A DNA stretch of 64,000 nucleotides from Octopus bimaculoides (Eukaryota), in the NCBI RefSeq assembly GCF_001194135.2, contig NC_068986.1:91137382-91201381 (forward strand), in the 5' to 3' direction. The notes under the pieces were generated by a model. That model had not been told where the DNA came from. It made no database searches and was given only the letters and a program-made list of their open reading frames with translations. Made by a program: the position numbers and the translations under genes. This document shows, piece after piece, positions 12,911 through 60,809 of the stretch (positions within the stretch are counted from its first letter, which is position 1; every line of letters begins with the position of its first letter).

Positions 12911-13195
12911 TCATTTAAAATGCAGAGATGCCTATAATAGGACATCTACTCGCTAGAAACAGCAGCAAAAGACTACATACCACAAAAGTTAGGGATAATT
13001 TCGAAAGGAAATGAAAAATAAAAACTTTTACCAATCTATATTCTGTACCATGGTTTCAAGTCAATTTTAGTAAGATAAAGATTATATCTTACAAGGTCGG
13101 ACTATCGTCAGCAGAAATGACCAGACAATTTCGGCATTTTTGCATTTTTGTATTTGCTGCCGATTAGGTAAACCGTAAATACGCGGTATATTTTG

Positions 13196-13802
13196 NNNNN
13201 NNNNNNNNNNNNNNNNNNNNNNNNNNNNNNNNNNNNNNNNNNNNNNNNNNNNNNNNNNNNNNNNNNNNNNNNNNNNNNNNNNNNNNNNNNNNNNNNNNNN
13301 NNNNNNNNNNNNNNNNNNNNNNNNNNNNNNNNNNNNNNNNNNNNNNNNNNNNNNNNNNNNNNNNNNNNNNNNNNNNNNNNNNNNNNNNNNNNNNNNNNNN
13401 NNNNNNNNNNNNNNNNNNNNNNNNNNNNNNNNNNNNNNNNNNNNNNNNNNNNNNNNNNNNNNNNNNNNNNNNNNNNNNNNNNNNNNNNNNNNNNNNNNNN
13501 NNNNNNNNNNNNNNNNNNNNNNNNNNNNNNNNNNNNNNNNNNNNNNNNNNNNNNNNNNNNNNNNNNNNNNNNNNNNNNNNNNNNNNNNNNNNNNNNNNNN
13601 NNNNNNNNNNNNNNNNNNNNNNNNNNNNNNNNNNNNNNNNNNNNNNNNNNNNNNNNNNNNNNNNNNNNNNNNNNNNNNNNNNNNNNNNNNNNNNNNNNNN
13701 NNNNNNNNNNNNNNNNNNNNNNNNNNNNNNNNNNNNNNNNNNNNNNNNNNNNNNNNNNNNNNNNNNNNNNNNNNNNNNNNNNNNNNNNNNNNNNNNNNNN
13801 NN
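13196..13802. other. Assembly gap (others at 3975-3984, 25975-25984, 37611-37768, 54402-54566)
   Basis: Runs of N, mostly next to (TA)n tracts. Confidence 1.
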
Positions 13803-13836
<34 letters not shown>

Positions 13837-25939: not shown

Positions 25940-25974
<35 letters not shown>

Positions 25975-25987
25975 NNNNNNNNNNATA

Positions 25988-26021
<34 letters not shown>

Positions 26022-27431
26022 TGTATGCATATGTATGTATATATATAGTATGCCAATATGTATAGCTATATGTGTATGTATTTATATTCCTCTGAAATGA
26101 GGAGCAAAGGCAAAGACAGATTTGTTAAAAAAAGAAATTCATGCACCACATGTGATTAATAATTAATTCAATGAGCAGTCAGATGATGAAAACCTTTCCT
26201 ATCGATAAGGAAAAGAAACTAAAGAAGTCATAACGTTTTGCAAGGAGGTTGGGGGCATTTTTTTAATTTTATTTTTTCAAGTCTTACAATTTATATTTTA
26301 AAATATATAATAAATTGTTTACATTTTCTGCAAGGCAGTTTCAATTCCAAATTGAAACCAAATTCATTTGTACTCTAATGCCATTGAGCTTTGTAAGAGG
26401 TTTGGGTCTCACAGCTTCATTGTTACAACCCACCCTAGAACTATTTTCTTGTGCCTAAGATGTTATTATCAAAGAGAGATGGATTGGCAGTATTGGTAAT
26501 GTGAATGACTTGCTTTATTTGGTTGTATTCCATTACATTCTGAGTTCAAATCCCGGTGAGGTCAAATTTGTCTTTCCTCTTTCTGTGTTCAATAAAATTA
26601 ACACCAGTCATGTACTGGGGTCAGTTTAATCAACCTTGTTCCATCACATCAAAACCTGTGGCCATGTGCCAATATTTAAAATTATTATTTTTATTATTAT
26701 TATTATTGTTGAGTGTGGATTGGCAAAATTGTTAAAGCATCAGAAAAAATACTTGCAATATTTGTTCCAGCCCTCAAGTTCTGAGTTCAAATCCTGCCAA
26801 GGTCAACTTTGCCTTTCATCTCTCCAGGAATGATAAAATAAGAAATTACTCAGCCACAGTTTGTATATCAGACTTACCACCTTTCTTCAAACTGCTGGCC
26901 TTGCACCTCAATTAAACATCCTTATTTTCTTTGAAATAATAATTATTGTTACACCATCTTGAGCATGGGCGATGCCAGTACCGCCTGACTGGCCTTCATG
27001 CGGGTGACACGTAAAAGCACCCACTACACTCTGAGTGGTTGGTGTTAGGAAGGGCATCCAGCCATAGAAACTCTGCCAAATCAGATTGGAGCCTGGTGTA
27101 GCCATCTGGTTTCACTAGTCCTCAGTCAAATCGTCCAACCCATGCTAGCATGGAAAGCAGACGTTAAACGACGATGATGATGATGATGATCATTGTTAGG
27201 GCAGTAGATTGTCAGAATCAGTTGAACTTGGGAAGAAAATACTTTGCAATCCTTGTTCTGAGTCTTTTACATTCTCTATTCAAATCCTACCAAAATCAAC
27301 TTGGCCTTTTATCCATCTGGGACTGATACTTTATCCATAAAGTATCAGTCAAGTACTGGAGTTGATGGCATCAACTAACCTACACCTCTGGTCTTGTGTG
27401 AAAATTTTTAATAATAATAATGACATCAATA

Positions 27432-36796: not shown

Positions 36797-36894
36797 TGCA
36801 CATCCAGTATGTACCCAGATTTCAGCATCAGGCACAAACTTACCATTTAAGGTTTTACATTGGTGCCATCATTCAGGTATCAACTGAGTGTGCA
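36797..36894 (-). promoter_or_regulatory. SECIS element (type 2) in the SELENON 3' UTR
   Basis: Minus strand reads ...UACCUGA AUGAU GGCACCAAUGU AAAA CCUUAAAUGGU AAGUUUGUGCC UGAUG CUGAAA UCUGGGUA...: AUGA/UGA core, GGCAC/GUGCC helix II, apical AA 11-12 nt above the core, and a lower helix extending to UGCACA/UGUGCA. Confidence 0.92.
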
Positions 36895-37059: not shown

Positions 37060-37150
37060 TTATAGGTTTGGTCTCGTACGGTACTTTAAACTACTTTGAA
37101 AACCTGTCTTCAAGAAATTTAAGTAAGCCACGGAGGTTGGGTTTTGAAAC
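37060..37150 (-). CDS. SELENON: Selenoprotein N exon 8, last coding exon (GFQNPTSVAYLNFLKTGFQSSLKYRTRPNL*)
   Basis: Long pyrimidine tract then ctctag| acceptor; phase 2 fits; FQNPTSVAYLNFLKTG resembles FEDPSTATYMQFLKEG; TAA at 37062-37060. Confidence 0.93.
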
Positions 37151-37867
37151 CTAGAGATAAAGAAAGAAAGATAAATTACTTAATAGTTATGTTTCCATAC
37201 AATTTCCTCATAGTTAAAAAATTACAATATAATGTAAATGAATCACAAACTGTTAATGAATTTAAATACATACATATATATGTAAAGATGGATGTATAAT
37301 GACTGAATTACAATTTCCTCACAGAATTTACTACATACACTCACACACACATTATTATTTGAAAGATTTTGTCCTTCTGTTGTCAAGAACTTGGTTGAGT
37401 ACATCAAAGACGTTTTGAGCTAAACATTTTAAGCAACAAATAGCAGTTCTGATTTCCATGGTTACATCAGATAGCAGTATAAAAGAAATTTTTCTTGAAA
37501 TATCTAACTGCAACCTAAAATCTATATTATCACTAAAACTACATCTCAAAGACTTTTTTCATTGTTAGTTAATAAGACCCCCATTGCATATTTATTTTAT
37601 TTTACAATAGNNNNNNNNNNNNNNNNNNNNNNNNNNNNNNNNNNNNNNNNNNNNNNNNNNNNNNNNNNNNNNNNNNNNNNNNNNNNNNNNNNNNNNNNNN
37701 NNNNNNNNNNNNNNNNNNNNNNNNNNNNNNNNNNNNNNNNNNNNNNNNNNNNNNNNNNNNNNNNNNNNAAGGGCTTCATTTGTAAGGAATTTTGTTTGTT
37801 TTTTTTTTGCTTCGCTTTCTCTCTGACATTTTATCTTTTGCTGACATTCATCAGTGAAAGATATACC

Positions 37868-38159: not shown

Positions 38160-39376
38160 TTAAATATAGAGGTCCTGAACAGTGCACACTGGTTAGGGTT
38201 ACCTTTCCTTTATATCATTACGTAGATGCGTCAGGGCCTCTGTATTTAAGTAGTACCATTAGCTGGATAATATCCCTGGTCTCGGTTGTGTGGGAATCCA
38301 GTAAGAAAGTTTAATAATGGTTGCTTCTGATAAGATTCTGTGGAGGAAGTGCCTGATGGCTCAACCTCCACAACCTTCCTAGGGATAGTGGAGAGTGAAA
38401 ATGGATGAATGGTAACACTGACAAACACAAGACTATAGTTACCCAAGGTGTTATGCATACAATTGATTTCCAAAACTACATGTCATGAAGCAAACTTCTT
38501 AACCATACCAGAAAGAAACAAAGGCAGTTTTTGAACTCAGTATGAGATGGGATATAAGAAAAACTGAAAAACATTTTGTTCAGCAACCTACTAATTCTGC
38601 TGTCCACCACTGGCGATTACATTAACTGTGAGTTCTAAGATAGATATAAAGCCATTGCTTTTAATAATAATTATTATTTCTTTCATAGAACCAAAGCTTC
38701 AGATTTAAAGGGAAAGAACAGAGCCAATTATATCTACTCTAGTATTGAATAGATACTTAATTCCAGAAGAATGAAAACCACAAGACAAAGCTGGCTCCAA
38801 TGGGATTTAAACACAACATAAAATTGTGTAGCTAAATACTGCAAAGCACTGTATTTGATGACATAGGAGAGGCACTTTTCTCTCAAAAGAAATATCTATA
38901 AAAAAAAAACCCCATCCCAGATCCTATTTGCAAAGTTTTACCTATATTACATACTTTAATATACTAAAAACTCGTTTCCTGCATATGTGCTGCTGAAATT
39001 GGGATGCATCTAATATACCTGTGCATCTTTTAAGCTATCAAATGTGGTATCCTTTGTGACACATAACTGATCAAGTCAAACATTGCTCCTTATAATAATG
39101 TCTAACACTGCCACTGCCTCTAATAATCATAATAACTATTTCATTTGTCACAAGGGTAATGGTAAGAGGATAAGGACAAAGCACAAAGATGGTGGTGGTT
39201 ACACAGAATAATGAATAACAGAAAAGAAACATGGAAAACAACAGTATACAAAAAGGAATGAAATTGGATGTTTGAATAGGGGATAGCTCCTTGGGGACAA
39301 CCTGCAAACCCAACAGATCTGAGATTACCCTAACTGCCAAGGACAATTGCTCTTTCCCTACTATGTAATCCAATTT

Positions 39377-39770
39377 TGTGGAGGTGCAATGGCCCAGTGG
39401 CTTGGGCAGTGGACTCACGGTCATAGGATTGCGGTTTCGATTCCCAGATCGGGCGTTGTGAGTGTTTATTGAGTGAAAACACCTAAAGCTCCACGAGGCT
39501 CCAGCAAGGGGTGGTGGCGAACCCTGATGTACTCTTCACCACAACTTTCTCTCACTCTTTCTTCCTGTTTCTGTTGTCTGTAATTCAAAGGGACAGCCTT
39601 GTCACACTGTGTCACGCTGAATATCTCCAAGAACTATGTTAAGGGTACACGTGTCTGTGGAGTGCTCAGCCACTTGCATGTTAATTTCATGAGCAGGCTG
39701 TTCCGTTGATCGGATCAACTGGAACCCTCGATGCCATAAGCGACGGAGTGCCAACAACAACAACAACAAC
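39377..39770 (+). mobile_element. tRNA-derived SINE with (CAA)n tail and a 10-bp TSD; second copy at 48435-48803
   Basis: A/B-box-like head (ggcccagtgg, ggtttcgattccc); TSD aatccaattt at 39367-39376 and 39771-39780; strong similarity to the 48435 copy. Confidence 0.88.
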
Positions 39771-40336
39771 AATCCAATTTATAGGTGTATACTGAAAGTA
39801 GGCTCATTTATTCAGGTCATAGTCATCAATTCCATTCCTAGTTCTACAACTTTATTGGAGGGCAGTATCACGTTCTTCAACCTTTCTTTTTTTCTCTAAG
39901 TGGAACTTGAAGAAACTGAGGGATTAAGTGAAGAGGAGAGTCTGTCCTGAGCCTTTTTCAAAAAAAAAAAAAAGACACCCATAGTTGTGTAGGTAGGAAG
40001 TCTGTTTCATAACAATATGACCTTGGGTGAAATCCCACTGTATAGCACCTCATGAAAGCCTTGGGTTAGCCAATACTTTGTGTATGGAATTTGGTAAGTA
40101 GAACTATACAGTATTTATGTGGTAGGGGACAGTGTCTGTATTTATGATGTGTCCTTTTATACCTCTGAACTTAGAGATTGGTAAATAACAGATAAAATTC
40201 AACTACTGAAATTGATATACTTACAAAGTCCATGAAGACAATGCCCTGTCTAAGGAATGAAATCAGTAAGAGAATAACAGAAACTTAAGTGATTTATTGT
40301 ACAAACAGTTGATAAAAAAGTTTTAAAATGCCATAC

Positions 40337-40500
40337 CCTATATTCCAAAAGTCAGATGGAGCATCAAGGAGATCATTGGCATTTACTTTATTCAAGATAG
40401 TGCCATTGGGGAGAGATACCATCATCATGACAGGAAATTTATAATTCTCAAGGAACATAGTTGCAACTTTAGCAGCCTCGTCTTTGCCTTTCTTCAGATC
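40337..40500 (-). CDS. SELENON: Selenoprotein N exon 7 (DLKKGKDEAAKVATMFLENYKFPVMMMVSLPNGTILNKVNANDLLDAPSDFWNI)
   Basis: acttcag| acceptor and GG|gtatgg donor; phase 0 to 2; Y.FPV.MM..LPNGT....NAN..LD is conserved. Confidence 0.96.
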
Positions 40501-41768: not shown

Positions 41769-41978
41769 CTCAAGATCAACAACAAGGCAAGAAGTACTGA
41801 TAAAGTGCTCCTTAAGGAAAGACATAACGGGCGAACTCTGGAGAGCAGTCTCTCGCAGGGTTCGCCCTGAACCTCAGCAACTCTGATCATCTAGTACACC
41901 CCATAATACGATGGAGTGAACTAATTTCCGTTCAGCCTGGGCCTTTTTAAAGGCTGAAGTAAAGTTATAATAAGGGAC
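41769..41978 (-). CDS. SELENON: Selenoprotein N exon 6 containing the Sec codon ([70 protein letters not shown])
   Basis: ttttcag| acceptor and GAG|gtaagt donor; 210 nt; in-frame TGA at 41876-41874 (residue 501) with homology continuing for 35 codons beyond it. Confidence 0.98.
41829..41867 (-). promoter_or_regulatory. Selenocysteine redefinition element (SRE) hairpin 3' of the UGA
   Basis: GGGCGAAC-C-CUG-C-GAGAG-ACUG-CUCUC-CAG-A-GUUCGCCC: 16 bp, one C.A mismatch, one bulge, 4-nt loop, starting exactly 6 nt after the UGA as described for human SEPN1. Confidence 0.9.
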
Positions 41979-43527
41979 CTGAAAATATAATTCCATATTT
42001 AGTAGAAATTCAACATACAGGTACAATACACACACAATATACATGCAAAAAACACTATATACACACACACACACAACACCTGCAATAGACACTACATACA
42101 CAAAATCATATACACTTGACTCTACACACTACATACACTCTTCAAGTATTGAGTCATGTAGATTAGCTTCATCGTGCAGTTTCCACATGACAGGGAGAAG
42201 CCTCTACATGGTTGCTCAACTTGCTACAAATAGCAGTCCAATTTCCTTCAGATCACATCATACTATTTTAAATAAGGAAAGAACATGAGACAACATACTT
42301 TAAATAGATTGGATGGCCATTGCTGGAACACTCTTTGTCATAGGTTTGCATGAGCAGGATTAAAATAGGGATTAAATGATAATAATAATAATAATAAAGA
42401 ATTTTTTACATGCTCACCTACATGTACAAACATATGCACACACAACTCAGAATGCATGTATTAACACAGAAACATCCTTTATATTGTGCACAATCATACG
42501 TCACTTTACGTAATACACACAACCACAGTCATTGTATTATAATCTATGTCGTTTTTAGCCCAAGTTTATGTTGTTTTTAGCCAAATTTTGGTTGGCAAAA
42601 ATCAAAAGTATTCCAACTGTAACCATTCTGTCTTTTTTTATTATCTTTCATTTATCTAATACCAGCTTAAAAGCTGCACTCCATGCAGCCTTTTAATCTA
42701 ACTCCTGCAGAGGCCTAATTGGGTCTGAGGCCCAAAACTAAAGAGAGCTAAAGAACATGGCTATAATACATCCATAATGATTATATGCCCCAGTGGTGTG
42801 TGATCAGAGGTTAAGGAGAAATGAGAATTAATTCTGTAATGCAATCATTCTATTGTTCCAGTCCCAAGTTGAATTCCAACTGTTGGTCAATTTGTCCCAA
42901 AGTTTTCATCTCGACATAAAATTAACAAAGTTAATGTCATTTATCACACTCCTTGATCTCTGATATTATCTGACAAATGCCAACCAAGAAAGCATGAATT
43001 AGCCAAGCTTTACCTGCTAGAAATAGCAACCCAAATGCTTTTAAATCAAATCCCAATAATGGATGTTCAAGAACCAAATGAAGGGCAGATTTTTCAATCC
43101 TGGGATCATCCTGATTTCAAAAAGGTATAATATGTCTATATAGAGCAAATGTAGACTGAGATACAGGTGTCCCAGACAGACAGAATTTCACGTTTATTTA
43201 TATAGATAGACTTTGATATCTTATATTTTAAGATGATAGAGTATAATTTAAGGAAAATTTGACTGCTATTTCTATTATGTCAAGTGACTGTACAGAGGCT
43301 CTTATTGGTTCATTGGTCAAGCAGGCATGTAAAAGGCCCCTTTCTTATAATCTGCACAACTGCATTATGTAGGGTATATCTTAAAACAGTCACACTACGC
43401 GACATAAATATGCACACACAATGTATATAAACATACACATGGTCTGTTGCTTAGCAACATTTCCAATACAATATACAATGCAAAAAGTCAAACAAAAGAA
43501 ATAAAATATTCTACTAAAATAACCTAC

Positions 43528-43766
43528 TTCCTTAAAAGGAAACATTCTGGCTTCCATACTTTTCATTGCTTCTTCCATGGAGATTTCTTCCGTCCATGAA
43601 ATAGATGATATTTCTTGGTTGTTAACCTCCTCATCAATACCTTCCACATCAATTTGGTCAGTGTGAACAGCAGATCTGCTGAGGGACTTCAGTTCCATTT
43701 TGGGTAGGAATCCAATGTTGACTTCCATATTGACTTCATCAGCCACATCTGTCAGCCATTCCATGT
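43528..43766 (-). CDS. SELENON: Selenoprotein N exon 5 (DMEWLTDVADEVNMEVNIGFLPKMEL...SMEARMFPFKE)
   Basis: tctttcag| acceptor and GAA|gtaggt donor; phase 1 to 0; DMEWL, NMEV.IG..P.MEL and M.PFK are conserved. Confidence 0.96.
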
Positions 43767-44871
43767 CTGAAAGACATACAGAGTTGTAAAACATGAAACG
43801 TTTGTATTGTAGGACGTTTTGCCTGTATGAGTATGCAAGTTTGTGAAGGAGAGTGTGTGTATGTTTGTCTATGTATACATGGTGTGTTTGTATGTGTGCA
43901 AGCGTGTATATGTATGCATGTGCATTTGTATGTGTGTGTATGCATGAGTATTTTCTAAATCCTATTGCATCATAAGAACACTAAAAATGTTGGCTTGAGT
44001 ATACCATCGTTGTCGTCTTCATTGTTTTAACATCCACATTTTCCATGCTTGTAGGAGTCAGATTTTCTATGGCTAGATGCCCTTCCTGTCACTAACCTTG
44101 GCTTGTATCCAGGTAAGATAATACTTCACCAAGGCTTTACATGTGTTCATGGAAGATTGGAAATGAAGGACTCTGCTTGAATGATAGTAGCTCATTTATA
44201 AGTATTCTATGATGTGAAGACAAGGACACACACATATATATGCAACAGGTTTCTTTCAATTTCCATTTACCAAACCCACTCAAGGTTTTACTGACCCAGC
44301 ACCATAGTATAAGACATTTTCTATGCTGTGAGACTGAATCCAAAACCACAGGGTCAAAAAGCAAACTCCTTATTCATACAGGTTTGGAACATTCTATCTT
44401 TATTCAAGCTATATTCATAGAAGAATTTGAAGAATCCAGTACTAGGAACTAATGAAACATTTGTTTATTATGTATGTAGTTCATTAATATATGAAATGAT
44501 TAGAGCATCTTATCCTTGCATATACTGATAAACTGTCTCAGCTTACAGTTGCTAATAACAGTTAGGTGGGAGGAGATAGCATAGGTGTTTTGGCTACGGG
44601 CACAGTGCAGTATTGGTGACAGGAAAACAAACTATTTGAACTTTCAGCCAAGAAACCAATTTCCCCTTCAGTCTGGGTACCACTAATTCAAATGAGCAAC
44701 ATCCCACCAACAGGTTATACATTATTAAGATTGTATAAATGTAGTTTATTCACACACTAGTCTTCAAATAGCATCATAAACACACAGCGACACATACAAA
44801 CACACATATGCACACCAGGCATATCAACTACAAAACATTAATACAATATATTTTCAATTATTTCTACTAAC

Positions 44872-45023
44872 CAACATTGAGTTTATTGTGAGTTGGTACA
44901 GCAAGATGGAACTTCATGAGAGACGTAGCATTTTTGTTAATGATGAGATTGCCAAAGAAATATGCTGGAGTGAACCAAAATGGAAGATTTGGTCGTTCAT
45001 TCAGCTGGAATTCTGCATGTATT
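44872..45023 (-). CDS. SELENON: Selenoprotein N exon 4 (RIHAEFQLNERPNLPFWFTPAYFFGNLIINKNATSLMKFHLAVPTHNKLNV)
   Basis: atgcag| acceptor and G|gttagt donor; phase 2 to 1; RIHAEFQL and PFWF.PA are conserved. Confidence 0.97.
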
Positions 45024-45181
45024 CTGCATGAATTAAAGATGGAAATGAGAAGAAAGAATATATTAAATATGTAAATATGAAACTGAATACTGAGATTTTT
45101 GACATATACAATATTATACATTATAAGTTCTAATTTGAAATAGGAAAAAGAAGCTCACTTTTCTGTCTAAAATTGATGATT

Positions 45182-46515: not shown

Positions 46516-47357
46516 ATGCTAGTTCTACAGTTCGTGCGTTGATAGTTCAAAGAGTTCAAAGTTTACAGTTAGAGTTAGCATGTTGGCTTGTTGGTTCTTA
46601 AAAGATTGTTATGTTCCATATGGTTACTACCATTTGTTTCAATTATATTGTTATCATATTGTTGATGTGTATTCATTTATCCATAAGGATACAACAATTA
46701 CACATCCAGCATGTTCTACTCATATTTGCTCTTCACATGACATTTGATGTGAACATTGTACTTTAAAATATATATCCACTACGATTAGACATTATTTGTT
46801 ATCATCCTCATTTTACATCAATTTTTTTACTGCTAGCATGAGTTAGATGAATATCACAGCACTTCACAAACGTTCATCAACTAGCAGTAAAAGAAACAAC
46901 ACAAAACCAGCACTTTTTTAATAGGGCAGGGGATACCCTTTCTATTACAAACCACTTTATGACATGCGATGCATTTTATCACACCACCAGCATTAGAAAA
47001 GTCATCTGTATCAGCACTAAACAGATCTCTCTACACTGTCAATGGTTTATTATCAGTTTTTGTCTTCCAAGACAGTTTGTCTTCTGTTAACTTGATCTTT
47101 TAAGTCTTTATGTACACCCTACTATGTTATTTCAGCAACAAACGTGGTCGATGCCAGCCCCTCTGGCTCCTGTACCGGTGGCATATAAAAAGCATACACT
47201 ACACTCTCAGAGTGGTTGACGTTAGGAAGGGCATCCAGCTGCAGAAACACTGCCAGATCAGATTGGAGCCTGGTGCAGCCATCTGGCTTCCCAGACCTGA
47301 GTCGAGCTGTCCAACCCATACCAGATGGAAAATGGTCGTTAAACGATGATGATGATG

Positions 47358-48434
47358 AATCTAATCAAATTACAAGTTTAGAGACAATGAGAGCACTATG
47401 TACTAAAGAAGTCAAATTATTGGTGCTCATATGGCAGGTGCTAGCATAATGAAAACAGCCGAAATATTTGTTGTATCAAGAAGTACTGTCTTGAAAGTAA
47501 TGACAGCCTTTGAGAAAGAGGGAAAAACCTCCTCATCGAAACAAAACTCTGGAAGGAAACCAGAACTTTCAGATAGGGACTGTCGGACTCTGACACAAAT
47601 TGTTAGAAAGGATCACAAAAGTACAGCTCCCAAAATTACTGCAGATCTTAATGACCACCTCAAGAACACAGTTTCCACAAAAACTGTTTGTTGGGAGCTG
47701 CACAAAGCTGGATTTCATGGGAGGGCTGTAATCAGAAAACCATTACTTTCAAGAACAAATGTTGCAAAGCATTTATAGCGGAGTAAAAACCTACAGAATT
47801 GGTCCCTAAAGCAGTAGAAAAATATTATTTTCTCGGACGAGTCATCCTTTACCTTATTTCCGACCACTGGCCGAGTATATGTGTGGAGACAGCCAAAAGA
47901 AGCATTTGACCCAGACTGCCTTCTTCCAACTGTTAAACATGGAGGAGGATCTGTGATGACCGGGGTGGGGGGGGCTATATCTTGGGAATCTGCTGGTTCA
48001 ACGGTTTCTCTTCATGGCAGAATCAACAGTCAAGACTATTTAAGCATTTTATCTGATCAAATTCATCTTATGGTTGCAGAACTGTTTCCAGAGGGAAACA
48101 CAGTCTTTCAGGATGATAATGCACCAATTCACACAGCTAAATGGTATAAGGAACATTCTAGTGAAGTTGAACATCTGGCTACCACAGTCCCCAGATCTCA
48201 ATATTATTGAACAAATATGCTGCATTTTAGAACAACAAGTAAGGAGTAGATATCCTCCACCATCATCACCACAAGAACTGGAGACTATTTTAGCTGAAGA
48301 ATGGACAAAAATTCCTTTGTAAACAATTTAAACTTTGTACAAGTCCATCATAGAATTCAAGCTGTAATTACTGCCAAAGGCAGTCCTACCCCATATTAAA
48401 ATAAATTTGTTTGAAATTTTAAGGTATTTCCATT
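47358..48434 (+). mobile_element. Decayed Tc1-family (DD34E-type) transposase in SELENON intron 3
   Basis: HTH region (MAGAS...SRSTV...GRKPELSDRD...KPLLS), IFSDES, TVKHGGGSVM, FQDDNAPIH and WLPQSPDLNIIE; several stops and frameshifts. Confidence 0.93.
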
Positions 48435-49499
48435 GGTCCAGTAGTTAGGGCAGTGGATTCGCAGTCATAGGATCGCGGTTTCGATTCCCAAACCGGGCGT
48501 TGTGAGTGTTTATTGAGCGAAAACACCTAAAGCTCCACGAGGCTCCGGCAGGGGATGGTGGCAAACCCTGCTGTACTCTTTCACCACAACTTTCTCTCAC
48601 TCTTACTTCCTGTTTCTGTTGTGCCTGTAATTCAAAGGGTCAGCCTTGTTGCACTGTGGCATGCTAAATATCCCTGAGAACTACGTTATGGGTACACGTG
48701 TCTGTGGAGTGCTCAGCCACTTGCACGTTAATTTCATGAGCAGGCTGTTCCGTTGATCGGATCAACTGGAACCCTCGACGCCGTAAGCGATGGAGTGCCA
48801 ATAACATATATATAGATAGATAGATATAGATATCATGGATGTCGTCTGGGAAACTAAAAGGTGAAAGGTGTAAGTAGCAAATGTAAAGTTTCAGCTTTTT
48901 ATAATAAACTAATTATATATATATTTCTCTGTCTCAGTCAGTTGTTTCATTTACACACCTATACCTAGCACAGAACAATCTCATGAGAAGATTATTGTTA
49001 GGTATTGCCATAATGAGTAGTAATGATGGGAAACAGGACATCCTGTTCCCATATCCTGTTACTTCAATATCCATGCATATAATATCCATCTACAGTCACT
49101 TTTTATATAATCTTGATTATGATTTGCATAATCACAATGATTATAAACATTTTGAAAACACATGTAATTGTCATGGGAATGTCTGAGTATCAGACAGTCC
49201 ACGTAAGCTCTGGTCGAAGCAGACTTGATGGGCAAGTGTCTTGATGTTAAATCCAGGACACTCCTGTTGATGGTTCTAGTATAGACAGGAAATACTGAGA
49301 GAGTTTTGATGAGAAAGGGTAGTTTATAATATCAACCCAAGTACATGAGTGGTACTTATTTCAACAACCCTGACAATGAAATGCAAAATCAACCTCGGCT
49401 AAATTTGAATTCAGCATGTGAAGGGCTATAACTAAATATTATAAGATGTTCTAAAGGGCTATACCTAAATACTAAGGCACTTTGTCACATGTTCTAAAA

Positions 49500-51658: not shown

Positions 51659-52407
51659 TTAACATACATCAGTAAAATAATGTTGGACTGAACCTGTGAT
51701 TTCTAAGCAATTTTTAACTTGTAACATTTACTTCTTGTAACTCTTATTCTTCATGATAAAGGCATAAACATCACAACATCTTTTCTCCAGCATAAATTTG
51801 GAGGTTATGCAATGAATGCAAGTTTTCCTAATGTGTTCTATCTTCTATATTTTACTTGTTTCAACCATTGGACAGTGGTCATACTGGGGCACTACCTTGA
51901 AGGGTTTTAATTAAACAAATGAAGCCCAGTACTTGTTTTTGACTCTGGTACTTATTATATCAGTCTCTTTTACCAGACTGCTATGTTACAGAGATATAAA
52001 CAAACACCAGTTGTCAAGTGATTGTGGAGGAACATACACACACACACATATAAGGTAGTGCTCCAGCATGACCAGAAACACAGCCCAGATCCTTGCAATA
52101 GGGTGGTCCCTGCTAAAGACACTACATATGGAGTGTAGTGTTAAATCCAGAAATGGATTAAATCCACCACCCGAGACCAGCAACAGCTCTGGTGACTTTC
52201 ACAGTTTTCATAGGGAAAATTTCACTCACATGCATGATTACACCAAGGCTCTCATAGATGATATGTGCTCAAACAAATTTCTCAACCACATAGTCATGCC
52301 TTCATTTACAGAATAGGATTGAGTCAATCAGTTAAATGTGGTCTTCAAACAAAATAGCAATTTAAATATATTTCAAAGAACATAAGATATTACATGTTAT
52401 CTCTTAC

Positions 52408-52769
52408 CTAAAAGCTATGTCCACCAACTCAGAATTGTATGCTCTAATGCAAGCCACAGCTCCCTGTGGTTCAAAACGTGACAGGAGAAATGGGCGCGGG
52501 TGAAACATAGAAAGGAGACTGTGGAAAATAGCTTGGTTGTCTGTAAATAGAGATGGAAAATATCTGTTGCTGCTTGGCATTTGTCCAGTAATGTACTGGA
52601 ATCTACTGCCTTCCCACAGCGTGTAGACTTTACCCACAGAGTTCATGAAATCTGGGTTGGTTGGCAGAAAAGGTTTGAAGTGTTTAGCAGAATATATCAT
52701 GAGATTCTTGGCTGGTTTTTGCCATTCTTTGAGTCCAGCAAAACAGTTCTGAGTTTCCATAACCTGTTC
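52408..52769 (-). CDS. SELENON: Selenoprotein N exon 3 (EQVMETQNCFAGLKEW...SLLSMFHPRPFLLSRFEPQGAVACIRAYNSELVDIAF)
   Basis: Poly-T then tttag| acceptor; AG|gtaaga donor; phase 0 to 2; the LLSMFHPRPF..RF.PQGAVAC signature is specific to SELENON. Confidence 0.97.
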
Positions 52770-54109: not shown

Positions 54110-54345
54110 TTACCTTTTACTTGTTTCAGTCATTGGACTGCAGCCATGCTGGAGCATAGCCTTGAAAAGTTTGCTCAAGCAAATCAACTCCAATACTTAT
54201 TTTCTTTTGAGCCTGGTAATTACTCTATCAGTCTCTTTTATTGATCTACTAAGTTATGGGGATGTAAACCAACCAATACAGGTCGTCAAGTGGTGGTGGG
54301 GGCAACAACAAACACAAAGACACACATACATACATTATATATGTA

Positions 54346-54401
<56 letters not shown>

Positions 54402-54566
54402 NNNNNNNNNNNNNNNNNNNNNNNNNNNNNNNNNNNNNNNNNNNNNNNNNNNNNNNNNNNNNNNNNNNNNNNNNNNNNNNNNNNNNNNNNNNNNNNNNNN
54501 NNNNNNNNNNNNNNNNNNNNNNNNNNNNNNNNNNNNNNNNNNNNNNNNNNNNNNNNNNNNNNNNNN

Positions 54567-56179: not shown

Positions 56180-56806
56180 AGGACAGCTGTGTAAAGAAGT
56201 GCTGATCTCTAACTGTGGAAGAAATCTGTAGTAGAGGTAGACACGTGACGAGGTGGTGAAGCATGATCTTTGAACTTTGGGCCTCACAGAGGCAATGACT
56301 AGTGACCGAAACCTTTAGTGATATGCTCTGCTTGAGGAGACCTGTCAAGCCATGGGAAATCATAGTCCTGGCTGATGCTGGTGTCACGTAACTGGCAACT
56401 GTGCCAGTGGATCATAATTGGATCTTTTGAGTGTTGGGTTACATGGAGGCAAATTAGCAGATGCTGGTGGTACATGAAAAACTCCTTTCAAGTGTTGTGC
56501 CTTAAGGAGGCAACGACTGAGACCTTTGGCATTATGTTGTGCTTGAGAAGAAGACCCATCAAGCTAAGTGAAATTGCAGTCATGGCAGATACCAGTGTCG
56601 CACAAATGGCACCCATGCTGGCGGCACATAAAAGCACCCGTTAAACTCTCAGAGTGATTGGCATTAGGAAGAACATCCAGCCATATAAACCATGCCAAAT
56701 CAGACTAGAGTCTGGTGCAGCCCCTCAGCTTGCCAGCCCTGGTCAAATAGTCCAACCCATGCTAGCGTGGACAGTGGATGCTAAATGATGATGATGATGA
56801 TGATGA
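56180..56806 (+). mobile_element. RTE LINE 3' end with a duplicated ORF-terminal segment and the same 3' tail as the (GAT)n SINEs
   Basis: DEVVKHDL..LGLTEAMTSDR-like peptide followed by the family tail ccaacccatgctagc...gatgatgat. Confidence 0.75.
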
Positions 56807-60275: not shown

Positions 60276-60809
60276 CCTGACGTCAATTAATCTGTGGGTA
60301 ATCGGAATAAATTCATTTAAAGACAAATAACCGTCTTCGTCCAAGTCATATTGGTCGAACAACTTCAGTCCCGCCTCTCCTACGCTGGCCAGAAGTTCTT
60401 GCTTGGCATTTTCGTAGTTCAATTTGTCAATTGATTTCTTGTACAAAATAGCAACTACAGCAACAATGATGCTAAACCAAAACAACCAGGATTTCATATA
60501 TTTCATGCAGTTAAAAAATTTCATTTTTATTTTTGAATCGCCAGTCTTTTTGCCTTTTTTATTTTGCATTCGTTGGCCTTTTGTGACATCGTTGCGGTTC
60601 GAACTCGAGTTGGTATTTACATCTCTAGAAAAGTTATCGGAATTCCGATAAGAAGACGAAGCAGCTTCGTTTGATTTCTTCGGTGAACTCTTGTTTTTCT
60701 GTCGGTTCCTTGATTCAGAATATTTGGGACTCGATGGAATCGACTTATTACCTGACTTGGCAGGAGACCGAGTAACGACGGAACCAGAAGGCCCCGTCGT
60801 ACTGGCCAT
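60276..60809 (-). CDS. SELENON: Selenoprotein N exon 1: basic Ser-rich N-terminus, transmembrane helix (WLFWFSIIVAVVAILY) and EF-hand
   Basis: ATG at 60809 in context ACGATGG; AGG|gtaagt donor; SVGEAGLKLFDQYDLDEDGYLSLNEFIPITHRL aligns with human SELENON [33 protein letters not shown] (recalled). Confidence 0.93.

Follow-up and report, generated by a model that had tools for sequence, protein, structure and literature searches.

Selenoprotein N (SelN) of Octopus bimaculoides carries an RNA hairpin 6 nt past its selenocysteine (Sec) codon that is very probably the non-chordate orthologue of the SELENON selenocysteine redefinition element (SRE), with a role in recoding that we infer from the human element. 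We make this identification because the gene, the codon, the spacing, and the sequence all match. The gene lies on the minus strand of the window, by which we mean the whole 64,000-nt stretch of contig NC_068986.1 that was analysed. Extending the SELENON SRE to an invertebrate is tidy but expected, and we regard it as confirmation rather than surprise.

The vertebrate SELENON (SEPN1) element is said to go back to Howard et al. (2005, 2007) and Maiti et al. (2009), and to the EvoFold hairpin of Pedersen et al. (2006); its stem-loop reportedly begins 6 nt after the UGA. In published accounts, the element is located <10 bases downstream of the UGA (PMC1440920), and its stem, loop, and spacer are functionally important, with mutations cutting Sec incorporation and raising termination (PMC8704476). 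In the absence of a SECIS the human SRE still drives readthrough, and in its presence more strongly (PMC4561486). Patient mutations in it reduce SelN protein and mRNA and cause myopathy (PMC3541580, PMC8584023), a link that the first-pass annotation of this DNA had mentioned and that the reviews bear out (PMC8704476, PMC3541580, PMC8584023). Few RNA structures within coding sequences have a proven link to disease, and the SRE is among them through human SELENON myopathy. SelN had already been reported as a selenoprotein in molluscs, annelids, cnidarians, and sponges (PMC3473315). Our literature search, which stopped short of the taxonomic scope of the original comparison, found no accessible statement on SRE conservation in invertebrate SelN.

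We assign the gene to SelN because it combines the SCUG motif, a series of mapped exons, an EF-hand-like first exon, and a SECIS-like element in the 3'UTR. The translation of the Sec exon includes the SCUG active-site region of selenoprotein N (41-residue stretch read). Six exons were mapped by tblastn with full-length SelN transcripts from metatranscriptomes as queries, and the seventh and last was placed from the sequence. In the order of the transcript, the features are:

60279 to 60809, minus strand: first coding exon (MASTTG..., a transmembrane segment, and the EF-hand-like DLDEDGYLSLNEF), 3' boundary approximate; stop-to-stop translation, tblastn 60488-60279
52407 to 52769, minus strand: SelN exon, 5' boundary approximate; stop-to-stop translation and tblastn
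44873 to 45025, minus strand: SelN exon (IHAEFQLNERPNLPFWFTPA...), boundaries approximate; tblastn
43513 to 43767, minus strand: SelN exon (DMEWL...MEVNIGFLPKMEL...), boundaries approximate; tblastn
41769 to 41978, minus strand: Sec-containing exon, 210 nt and 70 codons (cag/GTC...GAG/gtaagt); sequence and splice sites, tblastn 41981-41769 at no more than 72% identity to metatranscriptome SelN
40337 to 40500, minus strand: exon 3' of the Sec exon (DLKKGKDE...NANDLLDAPSDFWNIG; cag/GAT ... GG/gtatgg); sequence, tblastn extent 40548-40336
37060 to 37150, minus strand: last coding exon, ending in GFQNPTSVAYLNFLKTGFQSSLKYRTRPNL and the stop codon TAA at 37062-37060; placed from the sequence
36818 to 36881, minus strand: candidate SECIS with an AUGA ... 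AAA ... UGAU core; Rfam SECIS_1, 26.6 bits

As read from the sequence, the last exon joins the preceding one in phase 2, and its C-terminal motif D/NPxSxxYxxFLKTG agrees with two of the collected SelN sequences (L025 and L036). EF-hand Pfam matches in the first exon scored 17-21 bits, below the cut-offs; Pfam returned no family for the SelN body, and a PDB sequence search with the C-terminal part found no relative. The candidate SECIS lies ~180 nt past the stop codon on the same strand as the gene. Its match to SECIS_1 is full-length, against a gathering score of 35 bits (E = 0.11), and its canonical shape is not reproduced by MFE folding. The Rfam SECIS search of 12 SelN transcripts or loci returned none at E <= 1, the model being weak for these sequences.

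The rest of the locus is rich in repeats. A Tc1/Tc3-type transposase helix-turn-helix fragment at 47431-47778 on the plus strand (PF01498, 44.8 bits, above the cut-off) sits in a SelN intron on the opposite strand to the gene. Near-identical translated segments recur at ~39070-39780 and ~48450-48910 (minus-strand translations), and also at ~27000-27120, 47125-47360, and 56570-56700. These segments, for example ..AGASWSFRCF.SINTHNAR.GNRNR.PMT.. and ..TRLQSDLA.FL.LDALPN.NHSE.., lie in SelN introns and upstream, and the stop-to-stop translations in which they were seen suggest dispersed SINE-like repeats. N runs (assembly gaps) at ~13190-13830, 25960-25975, 37610-37770, and 54340-54560 have (TA)n microsatellites on their flanks, CA/TG-rich microsatellites are frequent across the window, and window GC is 27-39%.

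Within the Sec exon, the in-frame UGA, in the context UGC UGA GGU UCA, is the Sec codon of selenoprotein N and is followed by a spacer and a hairpin, which we resolve as follows:

41874 to 41876, minus strand: Sec UGA; the surrounding C-U-G-S-G-R-T is the same as in 33 metagenomic SelN loci
41868 to 41873, minus strand: 6-nt spacer GGUUCA between UGA and hairpin, read from the sequence
41829 to 41867, minus strand: SRE hairpin, 39 nt, from RNAfold, covariation, the synonymous recoding null, and the apical register
41867 to 41860, minus strand: basal 5' arm GGGCGAAC, 8 perfect basal pairs with GUUCGCCC
41859, minus strand: C, in a C·A mismatch with A41837
41858 to 41856, minus strand: CUG, 3 bp with CAG
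41855, minus strand: bulged C
41854 to 41850, minus strand: GAGAG, 5 bp with CUCUC
41849 to 41846, minus strand: loop ACUG
41845 to 41841, minus strand: CUCUC, apical 3' strand
41840 to 41838, minus strand: CAG, 3' partner of CUG
41837, minus strand: A, mismatch partner of C41859
41836 to 41829, minus strand: basal 3' arm GUUCGCCC

The hairpin totals 16 bp, and the span from the UGA to the last paired base is 41829-41876. In the lower stem (41867-41856 with 41840-41829), 11 of 12 positions are paired, and the C41859·A41837 mismatch is the twelfth. Both the coordinates and the RNAfold structure agree with the first-pass annotation, which had read a 16-bp hairpin starting exactly 6 nt after the UGA with perfectly complementary basal arms. 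The hairpin has an MFE of -30.6 kcal/mol, and the structure given above makes up 89% of the ensemble; dinucleotide shuffles averaged -17.2 +/- 3.1 (z = -4.3), and 0/200 were as stable as the native sequence. No family in Rfam matched 41829-41867, either at gathering thresholds or at E <= 10.

A stable hairpin in a coding sequence could be a by-product of a conserved peptide (here GSGRTLRE...SSP) and codon bias, with no selection on structure. This peptide is very conserved, and it fixes several positions of the stem that fall on the first or second base of a codon. We therefore kept the 17-residue window peptide, redrew its synonymous codons, and refolded the same 51 nt. The native sequence folds at -27.4 kcal/mol, uniform-codon recodings at -11.9 +/- 3.2 (0/1000 as stable), and recodings weighted by the codon usage of the gene itself at -11.0 +/- 3.4 kcal/mol (0/5000 as stable). 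Across 27 SelN sequences given the same treatment, only 0-7 per 1000 recodings were as stable in 25. Codon bias in the gene also runs against the by-product explanation, as the stem codons GGG, UCG, and CCC are rare elsewhere in it, accounting outside the stem for 1/21 Gly, 5/55 Ser, and 3/25 Pro codons, respectively. The window hairpin is real, and it is far more stable than its peptide or its base composition requires.

To compare the hairpin across species, we back-translated C-U-G-S-G-R-T-L-R-D/E into a DNA pattern, with every third position and the entire 3' arm unconstrained, and scanned metagenomes with it. This gave 41 matches, 33 of which were SelN (..LWGALDDQSC/U/GSGRTLR..), 25 of them distinct. 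Because the metagenomic SelN proteins are only 41-52% identical to the window protein over 256 residues, the set is a deep one. A protein search with the 70-residue Sec exon returned no match, since the GenBank- and Logan-derived SelN entries of the database end at the UGA, and a search with the upstream 256 residues returned 212 SelN N-terminal products, many with organism names. From labelled loci, we took three molluscs (Lottia gigantea, Potamilus streckersoni, and Lymnaea stagnalis) along with Branchiostoma lanceolatum, Heterocephalus glaber, Ameca splendens, Porites evermanni, and Nematostella vectensis. The closest unlabelled relative, a Logan transcript at ~60% identity, was added to these. 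Porites SelN is matched at 65% identity by L038, a locus from a coral metatranscriptome, which marks that class of metagenomic sequences as cnidarian. In a neighbour-joining protein tree, built with no support values, the window SelN is not part of the chordate clade and groups loosely with sequences that include Lottia and Potamilus.

Synonymous sites in the stem hardly vary in this collection. In the alignment of the window with 22 metagenome loci, Ser+13 is AGU in 21/21 sequences and Ser+14 is UCG in 17/17, that is, one codon of the six in every sequence. Likewise, Pro+15 is CCC in 17/19 and Gly+3 is GGG in 19/23. By contrast, invariant Leu, Gly, and Ser residues a few codons from the stem use 4-6 codons each, so that synonymous sites are frozen within the SelN stem and saturated outside it, which is not what a conserved peptide alone would produce. 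The context of the UGA is similarly constrained: UGC precedes it in 23/23 sequences, although the search pattern permitted UGY, and in the spacer GGU follows it in 18/23 and UCN stands in 22/23.

Pairing in the lower stem was scored in two alignments. In the first (A1, the window plus 22 metagenome loci, n = 23), the lower 12 bp are 95.7% paired against 29-51% for slid controls, and 5/12 pairs show double-sided changes; in the second (A2, A1 plus six labelled sequences, n = 29), they are 94.0% paired against 30-53%, with double-sided changes in 7/12 pairs. These percentages come partly from protein conservation, as selection by the pattern fixes the first two bases of each codon in the 5' arm; this bias is addressed by the synonymous-site and recoding controls, and the Lymnaea sequence was found independently of the pattern. 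None of 500 shuffles of A2 attained any of five measures, a count that is not a probability, given that the aligned SelN sequences are phylogenetically related. RNAalifold predicted the same stem from the alignment.

Several of the changes are compensatory even where the protein changes: a residue replacement encoded in the 3' arm goes with a synonymous change in the 5' arm. Arg CGA->CGG is paired with Ser UCG->Pro CCG in three sequences (L017, L031, and Lottia). In L034, L035, and L040, CGC or CGU is paired with Ala GCG, and in L012 and L035, Gly GGG->GGC is paired with Pro CCC->Ala GCC. In Lymnaea, the peptide itself is different (GSARSLRNSALRDPG), and a 14-bp hairpin is still there at the same place. 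In Nematostella, which has SRP for SSP, the 3' arm is shifted by one base with a bulged A. Given these matched changes and the recoding results above, we hold it extremely improbable that the hairpin is only a by-product of peptide and codon usage. Instead, because covariation, frozen synonymous sites, and the recoding null coincide, the comparison shows the signature of selection on RNA structure on top of coding, as the first-pass annotation had suspected.

Conservation is uneven along the hairpin. All SelN sequences but two divergent ones have it 6 nt past the UGA (7 nt in Lymnaea), and the spacer is 6 nt long in 30/31 folded sequences. The lower stem retains 10-12 of 12 pairs in 28/29 sequences, and the apical stem takes at least three registers across the 29 sequences, by lineage. 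As judged from these alignments, the constrained module is the conserved spacer with the lower 12 bp, and the apical stem would only have to pair. The two divergent sequences, L013 (GC 72%) and L033, are GC-rich SelN-like Sec genes with a CUGSGRTLRD motif and a different downstream peptide, and may be non-animal SelN homologues. Neither has a significant hairpin, as 146/1000 and 73/1000 codon-usage-matched recodings, respectively, were as stable; we considered them as evidence of a pre-metazoan hairpin and dropped them on this ground. Because of these two sequences, our claim is limited to animals: on present alignments, the predicted hairpin is conserved from cnidarians to mammals, and the claim goes no further. 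Within that range, the comparison shows predicted pairing, and not just sequence, to be kept in SelN of cnidarians, molluscs, amphioxus, a mammal, and many unlabelled eukaryotes.

The exon structure around the UGA differs among these animals. Five of the labelled taxa (Heterocephalus, Ameca, Branchiostoma, Porites, and Nematostella) have an intron 1 nt past the UGA (TGA G/gt..), leaving the UGA and the hairpin in separate exons (L049 9886-10860 in Heterocephalus, L051 6323-6777 in Branchiostoma, L052 8482 in Ameca, L054 16674-17467 in Porites, and L055 7611-11010 in Nematostella). Splicing puts the hairpin exactly 6 nt past the UGA in Heterocephalus, Branchiostoma, Porites, and Nematostella, which are four of the five intron-bearing taxa; in Ameca splendens, the next exon is outside the sequence range. 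The window and all three molluscs (Lottia, Potamilus, and Lymnaea) are without this intron, so that UGA and hairpin share one exon; taken with the protein tree, its absence puts the window SelN outside chordates and close to molluscs. Because it is common to cnidarians and chordates, the intron looks ancestral and lost in the window lineage; we had considered it as chordate-specific, which the same intron in Porites and Nematostella rules out. An exon junction 1 nt past a recoded stop may matter for exon-junction-complex or NMD effects on SelN mRNA. A second arrangement occurs in L012/L030 (minus orientation), from an AT-rich metagenome eukaryote, where a 60-nt intron interrupts the hairpin loop ~31 nt after the UGA (junctions GAAACAG/gttaaat...tttag/TTCTCC) and the spliced hairpin has 11 + 5 bp with the compensatory GGC/GCC. 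Since splicing restores the hairpin both here and in the intron-bearing labelled taxa, the hairpin is a feature of the spliced mRNA.

These observations bear on whether the structure might be selected for a role other than decoding, such as pausing the ribosome so that the thioredoxin-like active site can fold co-translationally or be handled by the ER, protection from NMD, exon definition, or service as a dsRNA editing substrate. Comparative data show that pairing is kept, not what pairing does, and less Sec insertion lowers the transcript through NMD (PMC8584023), so that effects on stability and on recoding are entangled. However, a distance of 6 nt that holds in nearly every sequence, across intron gain and loss, ties the helix to the UGA, and the human element stimulates recoding in reporters (PMC8704476, PMC4561486). 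A splicing role in particular is unlikely, as the hairpin forms across exon junctions in several lineages. Overall, we consider a purely non-decoding function unlikely and continue to favour a recoding element.

Direct comparison with a mammal supports that assignment. The vertebrate SELENON SRE and the window hairpin share the gene, the codon, the 6-nt spacer, 16 bp overall, and a loop with an ACU Thr codon. From the UGA on, 54 positions of the window and of Heterocephalus glaber (a mole-rat) align without gaps, and the basal arms are one base apart (GGGCGAAC/GUUCGCCC in the window, GGGCGGAC/GUUCGCCC in the mole-rat). The differences are concentrated higher up. The apical helix of the window has i+j = 59 with a bulged C and a 4-nt loop, whereas that of the mole-rat is continuous at i+j = 58 with a 5-nt loop; pair 21-37 is C-G in the mole-rat and G-C in the window; and an internal mismatch at 19/39 in the mole-rat is at 18/40 in the window. 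The window also has UGA and hairpin in one exon, unlike chordates and cnidarians with their intron 1 nt after the UGA. The first-pass annotation had identified the element as the SELENON SRE and had described its upper stem as remodelled yet still paired relative to a human one given as CCGGGA/UCCUGG. That stem is present in spliced Heterocephalus glaber; position, spacing, and basal arms are as in the mammal but for one A/G; and the flipped pair, moved mismatch, and slid apical helix prove to be part of a general pattern across lineages. Its suggestion of an ancient origin holds as well, and reaches deeper than it had supposed: with the hairpin also found in the cnidarians Porites and Nematostella, the comparison shows the predicted SRE hairpin to be older than the cnidarian-bilaterian split.

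Other recoding structures are alike in function rather than in descent. The SREs of SELENOT, SEPHS2, and SELENOP (SRE1) and the hymenopteran HRE are also coding-sequence stem-loops at a Sec UGA that enhance recoding and are not essential (PMC5727441, PMC4561486). However, they belong to unrelated genes and sequences and differ in spacing and shape, so that a class of function is common to them and not homology. The SELENOT hairpin begins 8 nt past the UGA (PMC1440920) rather than the 6 nt of the window, and the HRE has three stems and carries the UGA in an apex, unlike the window hairpin. Readthrough structures such as the extended stem-loops of the alphavirus type (PMC3159437) similarly place a stable helix a few nt past a UGA and were seen via synonymous-site conservation, but they serve readthrough by near-cognate tRNAs in viral or cellular genes, whereas the window presents a selenoprotein mRNA with a SECIS-like element, where the outcome would be Sec insertion. 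The eukaryotic SECIS (RF00031) is a cis-acting RNA element of the same recoding event. We rejected the window hairpin as a SECIS kink-turn, as 41829-41867 has neither the AUGA/GA quartet nor the AA apical motif (AUGA...AA...GA core), and the SECIS-like element is separate, at 36818-36881.

The bacterial SECIS is closer in position, being an in-frame hairpin directly 3' of the UGA, and raises a further alternative: that the SelN hairpin is of bacterial type, a direct site for the Sec elongation factor or SECISBP2 and not a passive helix. Mariotti et al. (2015) proposed a descent of SRE-type hairpins from the bacterial SECIS (PMC4561486), and the resemblance is repeated in a 2026 review (PMC12936836). 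The bacterial element, however, is essential and bound by SelB through its apical loop, and in SelN conservation is lowest in the apical stem and loop, with register and loop size varying by lineage. As read from the sequence, the hairpin is also without the AUGA/GA kink-turn core, and readthrough on the human SRE without a SECIS (PMC4561486) fits factor-independent action. The SelN Sec-site pattern found 4 chance out-of-frame matches and no bacterial SelN in 185,579 bacterial and archaeal genomes. A bacterial SECIS proper was rejected for the window hairpin in view of this absence, the variable apical loop, and a gene that is eukaryotic, with introns and a SECIS-like element in the 3'UTR. A protein-binding site of bacterial type is, in our estimate, very improbable. 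In a historical version, the SelN hairpin would date from when the gene began to use Sec, would descend from an in-frame bacterial-type SECIS, and would have survived as a helper after takeover by the 3'UTR SECIS, leaving the 6-nt spacer and 12-bp lower stem as a relic of the insertion signal. This version seems to us quite improbable, and neither the two most divergent SelN-like sequences nor the scan of bacterial and archaeal genomes lent it support.

How an SRE of this kind might work in the octopus can be sketched from its geometry. With the UGA in the A site, a 6-nt spacer would place the base of the helix at the mRNA entrance of the ribosome. By what is generally known of downstream stimulatory structures, a helix there could hinder termination by release factor, and less termination would give Sec-tRNA delivered by SECIS, SECISBP2, and eEFSec more chance to decode the UGA. 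If reviews of human SELENON are a guide, SelN output would rise and decay of the transcript would be limited. Evolution has fixed the UGC-UGA-GGU-UC context, the 6-nt spacer, and the lower 12 bp, even at amino-acid cost, and has left the apical stem free to change in register, length, and loop. Because the spacer and lower stem are fixed while the apical part drifts, the pattern argues against a sequence-specific site for a binding protein and for a helix at the ribosome entrance that would act through where it sits and how stable it is. The collected variants form a natural compensatory set that is usable in reporter tests.

Finally, the collection bears on how SelN is annotated. GenBank- and Logan-derived SelN products (P0006-P0120) mostly terminate at the Sec UGA, at ~430 residues; the Porites and Nematostella models (among P0123, P0130, and P0178) skip the UGA via invented introns; and one human UniProt SelN entry continues into a wrong C-terminus. 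Nearly all public SelN models examined thus halt at the Sec codon or splice round it, which amounts to systematic misannotation. Separately, two contig pairs from the same two metagenome sources, L006/L018 and L009/L023, are identical over the 34 residues before Sec and differ after it (REGPLESSPVTHYLKSNAVSSW vs. RDGPLESSPVVTLLNEEFVSSW), with the hairpin kept in both. Each pair could represent one of two paralogues, or one of two alleles whose conversion boundary lies close to the UGA.
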